Shown here: in pieces, positions 20,477 through 32,200 of the stretch
Layout of the letters: the number at the start of each line of letters is the position of its first letter
Numbering within the stretch: the stretch's first letter is position 1
DNA from: Lenisia limosa
Taxonomy: Eukaryota > Protista > Breviatea
DNA length: 32,994 nucleotides
NCBI GenBank assembly: GCA_001655205.1
Contig: LPNZ01003103.1
Location: forward strand, 1 to 32,994
Direction: 5' to 3'
Made by a program: the position numbers and the translations under genes
The notes under the pieces: model-generated
Database searches by the model: none
The model's input: only the letters and a program-made list of their open reading frames with translations
What the model was told of the DNA's origin: nothing

Positions 20477-23400
20477 ATGAAAAAGAACCCAGTTTTACTG
20501 ATAGTCTTGTCCCATGGACTCTCAGGGACATCCAGTGACCTAAACTACATTCAAAAGGTCCTCGAATCATCATGTACAAGGACGGAGGTTGGTGTAGAGA
20601 ATAGATTGATTTTAAGCTGGTTACCTTGTCCTCTTCCTGCTACTATTACGCTGTAATCATGTTTAGTTTGCTTATAATCGCGTGATTTTGCCATAACTGG
20701 CAAACGCCCTTTCACTCCGCCAGATCTTCAACCCTGAAGTGAACAATGGGATGCTCTCAACCTTTGACGGAATTGATGCTGGTGGAAGACGACTTGCAAA
20801 GTTTGCAGCTTGTTATCAATTTCCACCTGAATTCATACTTGTGGCATAGGAATACGACCCGTTTCATTTCCAACTTCTGTAGGGCGGTTGTGGACTATTG
20901 TAGTAGCAGGTCTTACTTAACGCACATTGCCTTGATTGGCCACTCTCTTGGCGGCCTTTATTTGAGATATGCTATTGGTGAGTAATCTAGGGATTCATCA
21001 AGTACATTCATTCATTCTCACGATATATCATTTTTTGACTATTCTGTTCGGCTTGCACATAGCCCTTCTTCAACAAGGTGGTGACTATTTCAGGAGAATG
21101 GTTGACCGTTGGGCTACTATCACGCTTGAAGCCAACCGTGTACATCAGCGTGGCCACCCCACATTTGGGGTCTAGAAGGCCAGACAGCATATGGGGCAGT
21201 GTTATCCATTCCTTTACCAAGTACGTGGCTTAATTAATAAAGTGTTCGTTGACAACAATCGTCACATTTCAGGTACCTAACGGGTACTACAGGAAACCAG
21301 CTTTTGCTATTAGATCAGGATGGAATGTGGCCTGTTGAGGTAAGAAACTATCAATTTCTCAGCAGTTCTTCGGATTTGTTAAGACAGTATATCACTGTTT
21401 AGGATGACAATATAACCCTCAACCATGGATCTGCGCCTCCATGTCTTGTTGCATCCCTGGCAATGAATAGCAATCCGGCGTTCAAAGGCTTGGCAATGTT
21501 CCAAAAGAGGTTTGTAATGTGTAATTGATCGTGTGGTGACGAAAAACAAGTCCAAGGATGACCGCGCAGGATATGTCTTGCCAATACAGTCAACGATATT
21601 CAAGTCCCATATCTCACAGCTTCAATTCGACGTACTGTTCCTCAACATGCTCTTGACCCTAAGTAAGCTGACTTTCAATAAGACAAACAACTGAATGTAG
21701 AACTAACACTTTCAGCTCACCATCCATTTTCTTGAAGTATCCACACATTGTTGCATCCTACAAGTCCAGCCCCCACCACGCATCTCCAGATAACTTTGCT
21801 GACGCATCTTTTCTGTCAACTCCTCTACCCCCACATTCAAAAGTTGGCTATTTTTTGAGATATTTCCCAATTTTGCCATGTTTTTAATAACAGATTTATG
21901 CTGCAGAGAGTTTGATGACGTTTTTTTATTTCACTTAATCATCATATTATATTATGCCGTCACAATTCAGTTGCCCAAAACATCCCCACCTTCAACCTCG
22001 TTTGCCCACACCACCGCCATCGCCGTATCTGGAGACCCTGAAGACTCGGACTATGTGGACATCAATATCAACCCCGTTGCTCCTTCACCCGTTCCAGCGT
22101 TAGTGGCTTTTATTTCACCTGATCAAAGAAAGAGATAAAATATCAATATTTAACAAGGATTTGTTGAGAAAGTCAGTCTTTTTTTGGACAGATGTGAAGT
22201 CCACCTATGACTGGTCTGTTTTTATCGTCACATTCCAGGGGCGATACAGAGGACCTTGCAGTGATGTTACAATCAGCATCAGGTAACTCAGACCAGGCAG
22301 GAGACCGTCTAAAAATGGCATTTGAGTCGCAGTACGGCACGGGTCGGGTGGTTGGCCAGGCTCACAGCCCTAGTGCCAATGACGCTCTAACCCAAGCCCT
22401 CTCCGAGAACATTTTGGTAAGCAAGGTACGACGTAGTCAATTTTCTTGGCTTTTAGTCTTTTAAATAGTGAATTTTAATACATCGAAGGATATTTGGAAA
22501 AAGTTATAGATGTGAAGCTATTGTCTCTGTCATGGATTAATTTATGGTGCAAAGGAAACATGCTTGGGGATAAGGTAACTGAAATGTACATATTTGTGGA
22601 ATAGTGGGCGTGTATTTGCCTTGAGTTTGTGTCAAGCTGGTACTGTTCATTCTATCACTGCTATATGACAATTTTTATGATTCATCTACGTATTTAGTTG
22701 TATTTTGGTTGTTGCTGCGACACTCCAACAGGGATTAGAGTTATTTTGTATCAAATCCTATATCATATCCGTTTTAATATTTCGCAATGTGAGGATTTAA
22801 GTTTTTGTTTGCTTCTTTTTTTGACCTAATTAGCAACCTGCGGAACCTGATTCCGAAATGATTGTTGAAGACCAAGAACCTGAAACCCAACTACCGCCCT
22901 CAACACCCCCCATCACGTTGCAAGAACCAATTGTCAAAGAAGTAGCGGCAGCGAAAGCGGAGGTGGAAGTAGAGATGGAAGCATCAGTAGAAGAGCCAAT
23001 TGAAGCATCAACCAGCAAGAGGAGAAGGAGGAAGGGGAAGAAGAAGGCAGCCCACGTGTCAGCCACAGCGCCATCAGCTGAAATCGAAGCTGAAGAACCA
23101 GAGCCAGCTGCTGCATCACCAATGAAGAAGAGAAGAAGTGAAATCTCACTCCCAGCACTTGAAACACAAACCCCGTTGATGGAGTCGCCTTCAACATCTG
23201 TTTCGATAGTAGTTGAAAATTCCACACCCACGTTGCCAACCCATCTGGATGGCACCCCACTTCAAAGGTTCAAGGGCCTGTATTCGTGTTAAGGTCATAT
23301 TTCATGGAACCTATGTGTTCCTGATTTCACATTTATCTTGGTGGTTTACTCCATTAGAACGACAAAGAGATCCCCGGTCTCAACATCACAATCAGCACCC

Positions 23401-23963: not shown

Positions 23964-24440
23964 GCCCTTTTTCTTGTTGACAGATAGTGTGTGTCTGTCT
24001 GTTTCTGTGTAATATTATTGTATTTATTTAAGAAGTGTTTACATTTGGTTATTATTTAGATAATTAGGCAAATGCGTCACTAATGTTGTTATGTCAGGAG
24101 GGAGATGCTACCAGCAAAGCATCAAGATGCCAGAGACCTGGAGGGATGCTAGAGGGCAGCTGGGGATTGGCTTGGGGGGCTGGGGAGGGNNNNNNNNNNN
24201 NNNNNNNNNNNNNNNNNNNNNNNNNNNNNNNNNNNNNNNNNNNNNNNNNNNNNNNNNNNNNNNNNNNNNNNNNNNNNNNNNNNNNNNNNNNNNNNNNNNN
24301 NNNNNNNNNNNNNNNNNNNNNNNNNNNNNNNNNNNNNNNNNNNNNNNNNNNNNNNNNNNNNNNNNNNNNNNNNNNNNNNNNNNNNNNNNNNNNNNNNNNN
24401 NNNNNNNNNNNNNNNNNNNNNNNNNNNNNNNNNNNNNNNN

Positions 24441-27400
24441 NAAACAGCTTGCAGTAACTGCTGCCCTTCTTTTCTTGTTCTTGAATATCAATCAATGTCT
24501 TTCGGAAGGTTGGTTGAAGTCTGTTTTTGATTGGTGACGTTTACTTTCGTCAGTGAGCACCCCCTTTGGTTATCTCCTTGAGTCAGGAGTGTTAAAGAGT
24601 TTTTCTTTCGATGTGGTGGGTTCTGTTGTTCTTTTGGAGCGTGACACCGTTTTGGACCTTTCAAGTGGTGACTCCCACATTGGTAGAGGGGGTTGCCTCA
24701 GCTTCTTCTTTCTGGTTTGGTATCACTATCCACTTATAATCTATTGGTGTACGTTTGACCATCATGATATTAGGTATCTCCGTCTTCGACAACCTCAACC
24801 AGGTGTACTCATCCGTCAAGTCTACCGGGGGCGTCCATACCATTGGTACGCTTTTCATCATATTCACTTATTATATAGTGAACAAAAATGCCGCCGAGGA
24901 GGCATCTTTCGAGCTTCCGGCCAATTCCCGTGTTCTTGCAATTGAGAAAGACGTTTGAGGGGATGTTGTGCAATTGCCGTCGGTACAATTTGTTTCCCGT
25001 TTTTTAATGACATACTGCCCATGAAGTGAAATGTGTTTCTTTTGCTGTCTTACTTTCAATTTCCACTTGTTTTTGCTGGGAAGCAATTCGGTTACCAAAT
25101 AGGCGTTTCAAGCACAGGACTCCCTCCTCATTCTTGCGGCCGACACAACCACTCACCGCTTCTTCCTTTCCAAGTACTCCTTCTCATCCAGTGTTTCCAT
25201 GACAGCTGTGGGTTTGGGTATTAGTTTATTCTTGTTTCGGTTTTCGTGACCATGCCAGGCTGGAATGCAACGCAAGGACCTGTCTACTACCTTCAAGTAT
25301 GCCGGAATCGGCGTGAGCGCCTTCGACCCCGTCGGCCGCCGCATGTTCTTCGTCATGGCCACGGTGGACGGCCAACAGTCTCTCGTCACTTTCGACGTCA
25401 AGACCATGTCTGTGACCTCCGTCGACAGCCTCACCACCACCGTTGTCTCCATGGACTACTGGGTCGGAAAGGGCCTCTACGTTGCCGCCTTCGACAGTGC
25501 TTCCGTAAGAGGGGGTTTGGATCGCCATGTTTGCAGTTTTGTCTCACGTTTTGTCAGAAGAAGAGTTCTCTCTACTCCTTCAACGCCGGCGTCTTCACCA
25601 AGGTTCATGAGTAGGTAAAGTAGTATATGCAAATCGATATTGTGAAACACGTAGTGTTTACAAATGGAGAGATAAGGAGAGGTGCAAAGCTAATTAAGTC
25701 GACTCCTAAAACGGCTTCATTTGACCCCACCTCAGATTTGCCGACACATCGATGTATCTCTTCAGCAGCGATCTTGACCAGCTCTCCGGTACCATGACTT
25801 CCGTGGCAAAGAACCTGAACTCTCTCCAGCTAATTTCTGTTAATCTCAGCGACACCACTAACGAAGTTCATGCCAATATCTCCTCCAGCTCTCCCCTCTT
25901 CGACTTTTACTACAAGCACGGTGAGTAACTTCTTTTTTTTGCATTTCCCTGCCTCCTACTCATGTTCCAGTTGATGAGTGGACCTGCGAAAAGTTCTCTA
26001 ACGATGGTACCCCTGGATATAAACATGTAAGTTGGGGCAATCTTTTGAAGAATATTGGTTCTAAAGCCAGTTTGGGTGTAGATGCAGCTTGCGTTTCGGT
26101 TTCGGTTTCAATGCATCACATCCAGGACTACGCCCCTGGTATTGATGGCACCACCATTGCGCCCGGGACGATTGTCTCTGTCTCACCTGAGGCTGGCTAC
26201 TTCATCGTCGATAAGGGTGAGGGGGGAGGGGTACTTTTGTAAAATAAACAGCAAACATCTTTTAGCGTTGGGAATTGTCGGACAGCGGTTGTCACACTTT
26301 AGACGGCGACCACTCGGCTACCTGCCGTGCCACTAAGACCTGGAGCAAGTCCGGCTTCACCGTTGCCAAGGTTGGTACCCGCATGATGGAGTGCGTCTCA
26401 CTATCAGATCCCCTCCGTCTCCAATGTCCAAATGAACCCTCCGGCCACGCCGTCAGTCGAGACCATCACGCTGACGTTCAACGCCCTGGGCTCCAGCTCG
26501 GCTGCAGACTGTGTCATCCAGTGGACCGTCAAGGGCTACGTAAGCATCCATTGCAAATCGGTACCCACTCATCACTCAGGTTGTTCCTGAGACATCAACA
26601 GAGTTGTCCATCCGTGACTACAACAATGGTATTCTTCTCAACGAGGGCGACGTTGTATCTGTATGCAGGAGCTTCTTTCAAGTCCAAACTGAGTGCATTT
26701 CTTGATAAATCCTTTTTTGGGGTCTCCTGGTGTGTCTCTGATGGATTAGGTCACCGTTACTCCACGCACCACTTCGGCCTACAATGAAGCCGACTATGCG
26801 CCCTTCACCTCGCCGGTTTCGGTGAGCCTTAGGCCTCTTGCTTTCAAAGAACAACCTTTTTTGTCTTCAAATAGCCTGATGTAATCCTTTTTGCTTTGGA
26901 GATTGACTGCTTAGATTTCCACCACTGCCGTTGCTTGCTCTGACTACTGCCGCAGCTGCTCTTCGCAAACCATGTGTTCCGAGTGTTATGACAACTACTT
27001 CGTCAAATTCGTGAGCTAGCCACGAAATAAGAAGGCACTTGTTGAAGACGCTCTGACTGACCCTCCAGGATAAGGGCGCTCTGATCTGCTCGCCCTGTCC
27101 TGAAGGCTGCCCCACGTGCACGGCAACCGGAACCTGCGATGTCTGTGCTGAGGGTCTCAGATGGCACGAGGGCAAGTGTGTCGTATGGGGGGGGACTTGA
27201 CATCTGCCTAATATGATCTGATATGTACTTTGTTTTAACTCTTCAGGCCTGTAGCGGTGCAACATTCCCATCAGCCAGCAACACACCTGGATCGTGCATT
27301 ACCTGTGCGGACGGCTGTGCCTCATGTGAAGGTCCCGGCCTGGGCAAGTGCACGGCCTGCCAGGAGGGCATGCATAGAGACTTTACCCTGGGCTCTTGTG

Positions 27401-28985
27401 TCGCCAAATGTGCTGACGGACAGTTTGCTCAGACCAGCAACTCCTTCTCTGATTGCACCGTTAGTGGGGAACATGGAATTTTACCCAACCCCAGGAATTT
27501 TATTCATAACTTGGGTAAAATTCCACTTTTTTTGTGAGTTTATGAATTCGTATGTCAGCATGCCTCACAACACAGGACTGTACGGAAGGCTGTGACAAGT
27601 GCAGCGCCAAGGGTCTTGACGATTCGGTGTGCTCGCAGTGCAAGGAGGGCTACCACCGCTCCCTCTCCGGCGTCTGTGTCTCCAACATCCAGGTAGAGTG
27701 CCCCAAGTTCTACTACCTCAACAAGGACAATGCTGAGGCCATGTGCTCAGGTTCGTCTCTAACTACCTTTCCTTCTGTTGACTCCTTTAGAATGCCTTGA
27801 CAACTGCGAGCAATGCATCGACGGCAACACGTGCCAGAAGTGCAAAGACTGTAAGCGGCCTAGTCATGTGAAATACATAGAATGGCCATCCCTTACTAAC
27901 CTTGCAGTCACCGACAAATGGAACGACGACGGCTATGACGTCTGCACTGCCGCTTGCACCGAACCATCCCCGGATAGAACTCACATCATCACTGACATCA
28001 CATCTTGTGCCAGCCACTTCTGTAGGCTCTTTTGCTTTTAGTAGCTTGTCAAATTTTGGCTTGCCTCTCAGAATATAACCCCCCCCCCCCAGACGGGNNN
28101 NNNNNNNNNNNNNNNNNNNNNNNNNNNNNNNNNNNNNNNNNNNNNNNNNNNNNNNNNNNNNNNNNNNNNNNNNNNNNNNNNNNNNNNNCTCCGGCGCCAA
28201 CGTTGCCACCTGCGAATACGTCATGGGGCAGTCCATGTGGACTGGCTTCGACTGTCGCCGCAGTATGCTAGAGGGAAAGCGTTGCTGTCTTTCATTATTG
28301 AATATAGGGCTAAAACCACGCAATCTTGGATTGAATATGGTTGTAATTTTGGCGACTCACACTTCGCAGAGGCCGACTCGGACGAACAGGGTGAAAACAG
28401 CTCTATCGACAACCTGGAGGGACAGGAGACGGTTCTTGCCTCGTCAACTGAGGAAAGCAGCACGACGGACAGCATCATTAAGGTCTCGGGTGTGAGTGTT
28501 GTCGCCATCGGAGCCGCTGCAATGATTGTGGTCTTGGCCAGGCGCAAGTCCCCCGAGGCCGAGGACGTCATCAACAAGGAGATGGGCTTCATTGGTAAGC
28601 TACTAGCCTTTTGCATCAATTCTCGTCTCTGCTGCCCTATTGACCAGTCAGAATCTGAGGCAATCACCTTCGACGCCAATGACGATGTTGCCACTGTCCC
28701 CGATAGCTCCTCCAACCAGGGCGCCAGCCTTAACGTGGGTACCCTCGCAGATATTTTCTAACCTTGTAGTCTGAGTTTATGATGAGCATGGACTTCAACA
28801 ACACCATGAACGAGGCCGATGTCGACGATGATAGCAGCGAAGACGGCAGGGAGTACTCCTTCATCACCGAGTCGTCCACCGGCCTTCCTTCCACCAACCT
28901 GTCATCTGATGGCAGCGTTGGCACCGCGGAATACACGTATCTCACCACCATGGAGCCTTCCGTCACTCCCCAGTCCTTCCTCTAG
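24441..28985 (+). CDS. Uncharacterised type I single-pass membrane protein with propeller-like, Sushi-like, Ig-like and furin-like Cys-rich modules (start codon probably in the gap)
   Basis: Signal-peptide-like KQLAVTAALLFLFLNINQCLSE right after the gap. Beta-rich repeats (SVFDNLNQVYSSV, SAFDPVGRRMFFV, MDYWVGKGLYVAA). Furin-like repeats CITCADGCASCEGPGLGKCTACQEG, DCTEGCDKCSAKG..CSQCKEGY, ECLDNCEQCIDGNTCQKC. TM VSGVSVVAIGAAAMIVVLA (28483-28539) followed by RRK. Tail ends QSFL* at 28985. Exon phases were consistent where checked. Confidence 0.85.
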
Positions 28986-29244
28986 GCTGTCCTTGTTATG
29001 TATCCTGTGTATGTTATGTAGTAATATGTTTATTGTTAAGTTTGGATATTGTTAGCACAGTTGTTGTTTTTATTGATGCACTTTAATTTGTCATTAAATG
29101 GCATTCATCTTTGTTCAGAATTTGATCAAGAAAAACAACACAGCCTAATTACAACTTAACTTCAGCTTCAAACTCAAAACAAGACAAAGAATCAAAACTG
29201 ACTACTTGTTATTATCGTTCGAGCGTCTGCCTTTTTGCGATATT

Positions 29245-32200
29245 TCAGTTCAGAAAAGCTGAAGAATCAGAACGAGACTGGTGGTAAAAATATTAACACG
29301 TCTAAACGAAGACCTGCGAACCTTAGTCGGGTTGAGGACTCATCCCGCAGTACAACTCGAGCCTTCTTGTTGAACTCCTGGGTTTTCTGCTTTGTCAGTT
29401 CAAATGATAAATGTCAATCCTCTTCTCAACTCTGGACCTGCCAACATCTCCAATTCCATTGCTTAGTTATTATTGCTGGGAAAAGCAACATTTTTCAGTG
29501 AAAGTTCTGAGATGGATGAATGTGTTTACTCTCTATTCTTTATTAAAGGGGAGGCCCCTCACCTTGGCTTGGCCCTCGGCTATGCCCCAGGTTGTGAGAC
29601 ATCGCTGCGTGGCTTCTTCCTGATTCAAGAGCGCGATAGTTCTGTGGGAGGGTAAGATATACAAAATGAGAAATAAAAACAAGGCTGTATGTATCTGGCC
29701 GAAGTCATCCAATTATCACGCTTTTCCTAGATATTGAATAATAGTAATTCACCCAATCATTTGCCTTATAACTCTGTGCACACTTCTGCATGCCTCCCCA
29801 GCTAGAGCCGCCTACGGGTCAAGTGCAAAGTGGATTAGAGCGTCACATCCCTCTTCCTGGATTGTAGCAAGCCGAATGTTTGACTCTCGAATATAATCGA
29901 TAAAATCGGGCGACATTTTATCCAGAGAAATGAGAATTGAAACGTCTTTTTCTGAAAATGTGAGCAGCATTTTAAAACAAATGTTAACACAAAATAGGCT
30001 TTCCTACCTATTTTCTCTAATGATTCAAGCTTGTCATTAACATCAAAAAGGTAGTCAGACACAGTGGGATTTCGAATTCGTAAATTCCGACAGATAATAT
30101 ATCTAAAGAAATCAGCAACTCTCATTTAAAGCGCACCTTTCAGAGTTGGCAGGTCTTGATGTGAAAGGCTTTACAATGGCAATGCTCTCAAAATGTAGAG
30201 ACATGATATAGAGAAGGCCGACGGTAAAGGGCATGAAAGCGTCGAAAAGCTTGCAGACAAAGTCTCCACCTGTTGAAATTATATCGTAAACTCTTTGTTT
30301 GAAAGGTAGAATAGACAGTTAAAAACAAAGCGTTTCATGTGTGAACACCCAAAAACCCCACCTTTTCGCACAGTACACAAAGCAGTGTTAAACTGGCAAA
30401 GAACTAGACGTTTGAGATGGTCTTCTTGAAAGTTCTCATCATCTGCTGTAGAAAAGCCCTGAGAAGTCAACTCCAACCACTAAAAGAGAGCAGTTCACCA
30501 TCCCCGCTTACACCATCGGCCATCAATAGGTCAAGTCCAACTCCCCGTGTTCTTTCGTCAATTACAGCTTGGTAGGACTTTACGTTCGCTTTCTTGTAGA
30601 TATCACCGGTATTGTCCTCTAGACGAGAAAATATGTTACAAAAAGCATGAGGTACCCAGCCTATCAAGTCCACGGCTAACCTCCATAGACGGCTTTGAAT
30701 GACTGCGGTAATAGCTTAAACTGAACTGTTAGCCCCAAAAACAAAACACCCAGAAAATGCTACTCTATGCAATTGTCCCAGCCCTGCCAACAGTTCCGAT
30801 TTTGAAGTCATTTTCTCCAACAAGAGTCATCCCTTGAAAGTCAACACGAAAGCAAAATCATGAAAGAAGTCAAAGCGTTGCATTTTACATACCTGTTCCA
30901 AAGCATTTCGACCCAAGTTTGTGGATTACGTATTGCGAGAACCCTCCAGGCCCTGCACAGACGTCGCCAAAGTAAAACTTTTTCTGAATATGAGTTGGAC
31001 TTGAGAAATTCAAAAAGTTAGTTGAAGTGTTTGTGAGAACTGTCAGTAATATTGCATCAGAACTTATGCTTACATCGGCTGGAATATGAGATGCTGGAGG
31101 GAGAAGAGAAGCCATATGGTCTAAATTGGCCATTTTCACTGCAGCCCGGTTTCCAAATAAGTTTTTCGCTCTGTTGATATCCTAAAGAGTAACTTCAGTC
31201 TTTTTAGTGGAAATAAGTTGCCAAGAAATAGCACCAACCTCATGCGGGTTTGCCTTTTTCCTTGCTTCCATAAAGGTCTTACTATCTAATTTGCCGAATT
31301 TGTCCTAAAAAAGTAAAGAAAAAAACTCCAGATTCTGTAAACAAAACAGACGCTCAAACCTTCGCTTTGAAAAGATCTGCTACAAGCTTTTTACCGCAAA
31401 ATGTCTCAAAATCAATTCGGCTTCTGTCCTACAACGATAAACAAGAATCCCTCAGAAGAACCAAACACCCACAAACAGCAGGACATTCCTCATAGCCCAT
31501 ATCAAACCAAACACCCACAAACAGCAGGACATTCCTCGTAGCCCATATCGAACCACTTCTGGACTGTCATGTCTTCAAGAGGCTCGGGAGCTACACAACA
31601 ATAAGCATGGGTACGCGCAATTTACCTTTCTGTGGTGGAAGCCAGGACCAAGCTTCCTCATGAGGAATGAACCTGAATGGTTATTGATGTCGCACGACTT
31701 ATGCTGCCACTTACCTGCCCATGTTTGGCTTGGTATGGACATATTTTGTTTTGAGAACGTCGTCCTCTTCAGGCACCTCGTAGCCAAGTCCTAAACATTA
31801 CCGCCGATAGGACACTTAACTTACTCAATTTATGACCCCTTTTAATTAAAATCAAATCTCATATTACACAGTCCATATTTAAAATCAAGACTGATGTAGA
31901 AGTCAATGCGTAATCCAGCTTACCAGCCTTGAACCCTCCTCCCGATTCGATAACAGCCTGACGACGTGCCATGGTTTTACCAATCTTTGAATCGGATGTT
32001 AGCCCAAATTTTTCCTAAAGGAGTGATAAGAATCGGTGACGCCTTGTTTGTTCAGGAGATTGCGATAATTTTCCTCAGCTTACAAAGAGGCCCTTCTTTT
32101 CGGTGTTTATATGATCCGATTCAGAGCTCTAGAAAGGTTACAATCAAAAACATGGGTGACTTTTCTAATACTAGAAAGAAGAACAAGGACTAACCAAAAA

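Follow-up and report, generated by a model that had tools for sequence, protein, structure and literature searches.

What kind of protein is encoded between positions 24442 and 28985 on the forward strand of contig LPNZ01003103.1 (assembly GCA_001655205.1) of the breviate Lenisia limosa, and what might its unusual series of extracellular modules serve? The window, that is, the whole stretch of DNA analysed, comprises 32,994 nucleotides, and a preliminary description of it had interpreted this locus as a lineage-specific, kinase-less mosaic receptor, in which a propeller-like domain, Sushi-like, Ig-like and furin-like modules and a second Sushi-like unit are followed by a transmembrane (TM) segment and a signalling tail. 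Examination of the gene model, of its paralogues and of the individual modules leads us, with moderate confidence, to regard the gene as encoding a lineage-specific binding or uptake receptor with an enzyme-free sorting tail, and not a kinase-type signaller. Its N-terminal head is probably a β-propeller, the relatives of which are secreted bacterial proteins.

Gene structure, copies in the genome and membrane topology

Three-frame translation of positions 24441-29000 revealed a single spliced gene of 24 exons with a product of about 950 amino acid residues (coordinates of all features are listed in Table 1). All 23 introns are of the GT-AG type and 33-150 nt long, several of them carry a CTAAC-like branch site near the acceptor, and their phases are consistent, leaving no internal stop. 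The joined protein, with the internal assembly gap written as X, was used in local scripts (translation, hydropathy, local hidden Markov models [HMMs] and hhalign), whereas the Pfam, database search and structure tests were run on single exons, those of at least 20 residues in the case of Pfam.

Hydropathy analysis of the joined model detected just two hydrophobic stretches, namely the signal peptide and a TM helix at model residues 812-830, the latter kept in the paralogue, and translation placed an acidic, Ser/Thr-rich stalk directly in front of the helix. All three elements had been recognized in the preliminary description, and the product is a type I single-pass membrane protein.

The same layout is found three times in the genome: in the window, on contig C3930 and in a third copy, the pieces of which lie on C5268 (2.6 kb), C1521 (0.6 kb) and C312 (2.5 kb) with the modules in the same order. 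The C3930 paralogue matches the window gene exon by exon with 31-74% identity; its introns have diverged in sequence, and the intron positions compared coincide, except for two extra introns in that copy. The module order proposed earlier is thus borne out by both the gene model and the collinearity of C3930, and, in agreement with the earlier statement that the combination belongs to no recognized family, no named family with the same module architecture was found. With three copies in the genome and no other eukaryote-like relative of the head among 1.84 billion representative proteins, the family looks three-membered and lineage-specific, as judged from sequence comparison. An open reading frame (ORF) on the ENA metagenome contig ERZ3820729 resembles the C5268 piece, a likeness noted without direct comparison, and Lenisia limosa or a close relative may accordingly be present in another public assembly.

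Two contigs of the poly(A) metatranscriptome X2, which stems from the same study as the DNA run X1 used below, map to the gene. The first one (28770-29058) has its start precisely at the predicted acceptor, preceded by seven letters that do not align, as would be expected after splicing; the 3' end of the gene is transcribed and is spliced at 28770. The second one (28466-28674, depth 2) keeps the predicted 57-nt intron 28595-28651, which in the window copy is in frame and free of stops. The corresponding intron of C3930 contains a stop and therefore must be spliced out in that paralogue. The contig could reflect intron retention, which would lengthen the tail by 19 residues, or else pre-mRNA not yet spliced or carried-over DNA. 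No RNA contig of X2 was found over exons 1-21.

This last observation is what could be said for a gene-model artefact, in which an adjacent gene for a secreted propeller and one for a Cys-rich TM protein would have been wrongly joined. Such a fusion is nevertheless highly improbable: the C3930 copy repeats both the module order and the intron positions, the pieces of the third copy cover the same modules, every one of the 23 junctions is in frame with no terminal stop, the exons are spaced by at most 150 nt, and there is no second signal peptide.

Two assembly gaps touch the gene. The upstream run of N (24190-24441) removes the start codon, and exon 1 opens in the middle of the signal peptide; judging from an alignment with the paralogue, in which this exon is complete (MFSKRHHGLLVALFILLNTHLCVSE, beginning with ATG), about three 5' codons are missing. 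A DNA contig of the public run X1 reaches about 640 nt upstream of 24442. The ATG at 24611 (MWWVLLFFWSV..., ORF 24596-24736, forward strand) was considered as the start and rejected, as it imposes the wrong frame over exon 2, where C3930 conserves the other one; this ORF mimics a signal peptide and could mislead gene predictors. The internal gap (28098-28188) is bridged from 28097 to 28189 by a contig of X1 that matches without mismatch on both flanks and inserts 38 letters, not 91. These letters keep the frame from the first five bases of exon 21 into 28189 and add 13 residues (TCEFTCASAFESN), at the place of which C3930 carries TCPFICSVNYEAPP; the sequence therefore runs on in frame across the gap, which the assembly shows as too long. 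More generally, both gaps, as well as those of loci L007 and L006, adjoin G- or C-runs, and the single gap tested was over-estimated in the assembly (91 N for 38 real letters).

The N-terminal head is related to secreted bacterial proteins

The N-terminal domain of about 290 residues consists of three two-blade units, of which the middle one is preserved best. Its 82-residue exon (25259-25504) was compared by phmmer with the 1.84 billion representative proteins and yielded 34 matches, those to family members having E values from 4e-16 to 1e-3 and that to a protein of 3384 residues with 30 repeats a value of 1.8e-36. Nearly all relatives are about 300 residues long and match in three stretches each, the 3384-residue protein in 30. 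They bear DUF6923 or DUF4394 and the sorting tails IPTL-CTERM, Por_Secre_tail (type IX secretion system, T9SS) and CHU_C, several of them carry PF21959, and one, encoded on a metagenome contig of 80 kb, has a bacterial gcvT-H-P operon as its neighbour. The sole eukaryote-like match among these 1.84 billion proteins is an ORF fragment resembling the third Lenisia copy.

A profile built from 24 bacterial relatives aligned to model residues 159-295 with an E value of 1e-16 (one-sequence search) and, weakly, to residues 54-114 as well; in an earlier alignment, made with a model that had the wrong 5' end, the profile was collinear over most of the head domain. The same profile matched propellers of known structure in PDB (LRP2 YWTD, TolB and YncE) at an E value of 2e-6. 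The AlphaFold2 model of the bacterial homologue P0004 reached a predicted local distance difference test score (pLDDT) of 92, and Foldseek aligned it with the six-bladed propellers TolB, nidogen and LRP4/6. The fold of P0004 and the shared three two-blade units therefore support the propeller interpretation by homology, and the N-terminal residues are predicted to form a six-bladed β-propeller of the bacterial DUF6923/DUF4394 kind. The Pfam model of DUF6923 (PF21959) itself matched neither the exons nor a six-frame translation of the genome, and the literature search returned no paper mentioning DUF4394 or DUF6923.

Thus, the propeller of the preliminary description holds as probable, but not the LDLR, plexin or integrin type to which it had been compared. 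As regards the YWTD propeller of the LDLR type, no exon gave a Pfam match to Ldl_recept_b or EGF, and the one link to this type is the distant match of the bacterial profile to LRP2; as regards the seven-bladed propellers of plexins, semaphorins and integrin alpha chains, exon-wise Pfam gave no match to Sema, PSI, TIG or FG-GAP, neither Sema nor integrin occurred among the PDB sequence matches or the fold matches of P0004, and the tail is devoid of KxGFFKR.

A more far-reaching proposal is that the head was acquired from bacteria as a propeller, then broken by introns and joined to the Sushi/furin stalk, and that the breviate would use it to recognize or hold bacteria, be they Arcobacter epibionts or prey. 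Outside the gene family described here, DUF6923/DUF4394 has been seen in secreted bacterial proteins only. We regard the combined scenario as unlikely. Lenisia carries hydrogen-scavenging Arcobacter epibionts, and should the head indeed be of bacterial origin and bind bacteria, the gene would offer a concrete molecular entry point to the way in which Lenisia retains these epibionts.

The stalk combines Sushi-like and furin-like units

A canonical Sushi module has about 60 residues, four cysteines (paired 1-3 and 2-4) and a tryptophan before the fourth cysteine, and the cut-off of the Pfam model (PF00084) is 20.7 bits. In a six-frame scan of the genome this model gave 31 matches, of which about 19 exceeded the cut-off and many were six-cysteine variants; nothing was detected in the window contig (C3103) or in C3930, where both Sushi-like units are split by introns, and unit 2 of the window by the gap as well. 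Unit 2 fits the Cys/Trp pattern with one extra cysteine pair, its spacing being that of many of the 14 Pfam-positive units retrieved from this genome. With a home-made HMM built from the latter, the complete unit 2 of the paralogue scored 6.2 bits, a value reached by one of 500 shuffled sequences; hhalign gave P 0.0055 for unit 2, and the protein language-model features of the paralogue's half-unit were nearest to Sushi clusters (0.93, 75 of 100 matches). These results lend modest support, and unit 2 is taken as a probable Sushi variant. Unit 1 retains two of the four cysteines, the Cys2-Cys4 pair being lost, and has no Pfam match; it scored 10.7 bits with the home-made HMM, a value that none of 500 shuffles reached and that covers the G..tC...tWS motif only, and it is best described as a putative degenerate Sushi-like unit. 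The claim of two Sushi units consequently holds better for the second, on the strength of its Cys/Trp spacing and features, than for the first with its reduced cysteine set, and neither attains the Pfam threshold exon by exon.

Between unit 1 and the furin-like region lies a β-rich unit of about 95 residues, the one labelled Ig-like in the preliminary description. None of its three exons has a Pfam match, and the first of them is 70% identical to that of the paralogue.

The furin-like pattern C-x2-C-x3-C-x2-C is met five times, in line with the approximate number given earlier. Among the furin and VSP families considered in Pfam (PF00757, PF15913, PF03302 and PF14843) and beyond, the exon-wise matches remained below threshold: VSP with an E value of 0.006 (16 bits against a cut-off of 31.4), GF_recep_IV with 0.07 (13.4 bits against 29.5) and DUF7630 with 0.019. 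The language-model features of the largest furin-repeat exon are nearest to Furin-like_2 and VSP clusters (0.91, 174-181 shared features), GF_recep_IV being a further near cluster, and support the furin-like reading along with the cysteine spacing. When PDB sequences were searched by phmmer with two of the furin-repeat exons, nothing meaningful was returned. The AlphaFold2 model of the 71-residue exon, made from a three-row alignment, had a pLDDT of 54.8 and no Foldseek match at E ≤ 0.001; its top non-significant rows were the Fu1-Fu2 region of R-spondin and the Cys-rich domain of CaSR, and neither the model nor these rows were used as evidence.

As VSP is the best, albeit sub-threshold, Pfam match and VSP clusters are among the feature neighbours, the product might be a structural or variable surface coat of the Giardia VSP/HCMP kind, the Cys-rich repeats of which protect the cell surface without a specific ligand or trafficking role. 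Giardia VSPs have a very short conserved cytoplasmic tail, CRGKA, and form a large variant gene family. Here, by contrast, there are three copies only, the tail of 117 residues ends in QSFL and is partly conserved, and both the propeller head and the Sushi units are conserved between copies, all of which makes a coat function quite unlikely.

The cytoplasmic tail resembles a sorting tail

A kinase domain would not fit into the tail, which is rich in Ser, Asp, Glu and Thr and gave no Pfam family at E ≤ 10, so that the kinase-less nature of the protein, stated earlier, stands. No other copy of the tail exon was found in the genome at E ≤ 0.01; the paralogous tail was recovered by reading the exons of C3930. 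With the full tails aligned, stalk, TM helix and tail are about 35% identical between the two copies, and the islands kept are KEM, IESE[AV][IT]F, NQG.[SN]L, [SA]EF, Y(C)SF[IV] and T.M.P.V. The conserved tyrosine fits the YxxPhi motif.

The two Yxx[IL] motifs of the window copy, YSFI and YTYL, could also be taken as phosphorylation sites that recruit SH2-type adaptors, in the manner of immunoreceptor tyrosine-based activation or inhibition motifs (ITAM/ITIM), which would make the product a phosphotyrosine signalling receptor. About 35 residues separate the two motifs, however, a distance unlike that within an ITAM, and the first tyrosine alone is kept in the paralogue. Moreover, a survey of the adhesome did not detect FAK-cSRC in Breviatea (bioRxiv 10.1101/2020.04.29.069435), and this makes a phosphotyrosine reading less attractive; we consider it very unlikely. 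Because the conserved tyrosine fits YxxPhi and because of the same survey result, a sorting or endocytic function is favoured over phosphotyrosine signalling. The term signalling tail is not supported: the conserved features look like sorting signals, namely the YxxPhi-type motif and, in the window copy only, an acidic cluster.

A sorting tail would equally suit an intracellular cargo-sorting receptor comparable to Vps10/sortilin or the plant VSR, the propeller of which would bind, in the Golgi, soluble cargo destined for lysosomes or for secretion while the tail drives Golgi-endosome cycling. The layout (propeller, Cys-rich region, TM helix and a short tail with acidic and Tyr motifs but no enzymatic domain) fits such a function; on the other hand, neither Vps10 nor BNR repeats turned up as relatives in any search, a dileucine motif was not seen, and a long Sushi/furin stalk with an acidic Ser/Thr linker is typical of plasma-membrane proteins. 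An intracellular role of this type therefore appears unlikely.

Proposed function as a binding and uptake receptor

In the receptor that we favour, the propeller would serve as the ligand-binding head, and the Sushi-like, β-rich, five furin-like and six-cysteine Sushi units would form, as their patterns and features suggest, a rigid disulfide-rich stalk, lifting the head from the membrane above an acidic, probably glycosylated linker. The head would bind an extracellular ligand, for example a bacterial surface, prey or a substrate, and the occupied receptor may then be internalized or sorted through its tail by means of the conserved YxxPhi tyrosine motif and, in the window copy, the acidic cluster DVDDDSSEDG.

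Several points weigh against this proposal. The fold of the head rests on the structure model of a homologue from bacteria; for the Sushi, furin and "Ig-like" units, the tests were made exon by exon only; the acidic cluster and the second tyrosine motif of the window copy lack conservation in the paralogue; and YxxPhi motifs and acidic clusters are short and arise by chance. The RNA is confined to 28466-29058, with one of the contigs, of depth 2, retaining the intron 28595-28651, and the ligand, the localization and the trafficking roles are inferred.

Feature coordinates and neighbouring genes

The genes next to the receptor gene are ordinary eukaryotic ones. Upstream lies a gene for a DUF676-type putative serine esterase (20477-21233, forward strand, E value of 3.7e-5), and downstream one for an FtsJ-like methyltransferase (30467-31139, reverse strand), the match of which (E value of 1.6e-4) is just under the cut-off.

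Table 1. Exons and predicted modules of the receptor gene in window coordinates, with contigs of the genome that carry Sushi matches.
Feature	Position	Strand	Basis and remarks
Exons 1-6	24442-24508, 24554-24682, 24774-24845, 24879-24952, 25103-25207, 25259-25504	+	
Exons 7-12	25558-25610, 25736-25920, 25971-26026, 26126-26216, 26303-26370, 26408-26539	+	
Exons 13-18	26580-26660, 26750-26821, 26915-27010, 27069-27182, 27247-27459, 27576-27750	+	
Exons 19-24	27791-27850, 27908-28021, 28093-28262, 28370-28594, 28652-28734, 28770-28985	+	
Signal peptide, h-region and cleavage region	24442-24508 (exon 1)	+	Reads KQLAVTAALLFLFLNINQCLSE; aligns to first exon of C3930
N-terminal domain of about 290 aa, probable six-bladed β-propeller	24554-25920 (exons 2-8)	+	Three two-blade units
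Sushi-like unit 1, degenerate	25971-26370 (exons 9-11)	+	Cys1, Cys3 and Trp kept; pattern conserved in paralogue
β-rich unit of about 95 aa, one Cys	26408-26821 (exons 12-14; 44, 27 and 24 aa)	+	Conserved in paralogue
Five furin-like (FU/VSP-type) repeats	26915-27954 (exons 15-19 and 27908-27954 of exon 20)	+	Cysteine spacing
Sushi-like unit 2, six cysteines	27955-28255 (exons 20 and 21)	+	Spans gap 28098-28188
Acidic Ser/Thr-rich juxtamembrane stalk	28370-28482	+	Translation; partly kept in paralogue
TM helix, 19 aa, followed by RRK	28483-28539	+	Kyte-Doolittle peak 2.45; kept in paralogue
Cytoplasmic tail, 117 aa and stop codon	28540-28594, 28652-28734, 28770-28985	+	Acidic cluster, YSFI, YTYL
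Contigs with Pfam Sushi matches	C9396, C10648, C8715, C10302, C3679, C1104 and others		Six-frame PF00084 scan

Comparison with known systems

The closest likeness of the head is to the uncharacterized bacterial DUF6923/DUF4394 proteins, with which it shares the two-blade repeat, exemplified by the sAFDPvGRRlFF motif, and the profile of which fits its central and C-terminal blades best. Unlike in these proteins, the motif is well kept in the middle unit only, and the head, which six spliceosomal introns divide into seven exons, is joined to a stalk, a TM helix and a tail of eukaryotic type. Five C-x2-C-x3-C-x2-C repeats preceding a single TM helix are a feature that the product shares with protist FU proteins (Giardia VSP/HCMP) and with the Cys-rich regions found in EGFR and the insulin receptor; the product differs from them in having no L domain, kinase or CRGKA tail, and in the addition of a propeller and Sushi units. 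Compared with Sushi/CCP surface proteins, unit 2 shares the CxxP start, the tryptophan and the six-cysteine spacing of the Pfam-positive Sushi units of this genome, whereas the gene has two such units and no tandem array. In its overall layout, the protein is reminiscent of the LDL-receptor family and of sortilin/Vps10, which likewise unite a propeller ectodomain with an enzyme-free tail carrying Tyr-based and acidic motifs, and it may work in a similar manner; since no YWTD/Ldl_recept_b, LDL-A, EGF, Vps10 or NPxY element was found, this is an analogy of layout and not membership.

Breviates branch beside apusomonads and opisthokonts, and their surface-protein repertoire therefore bears on how the adhesion and receptor modules of the animal type were assembled. 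Against this background, the gene, present in three copies, encodes a single-pass protein in which Sushi-like and furin-like modules occur together with a propeller head of bacterial type; its modules are known ones and their combination is new, without a new principle being involved.

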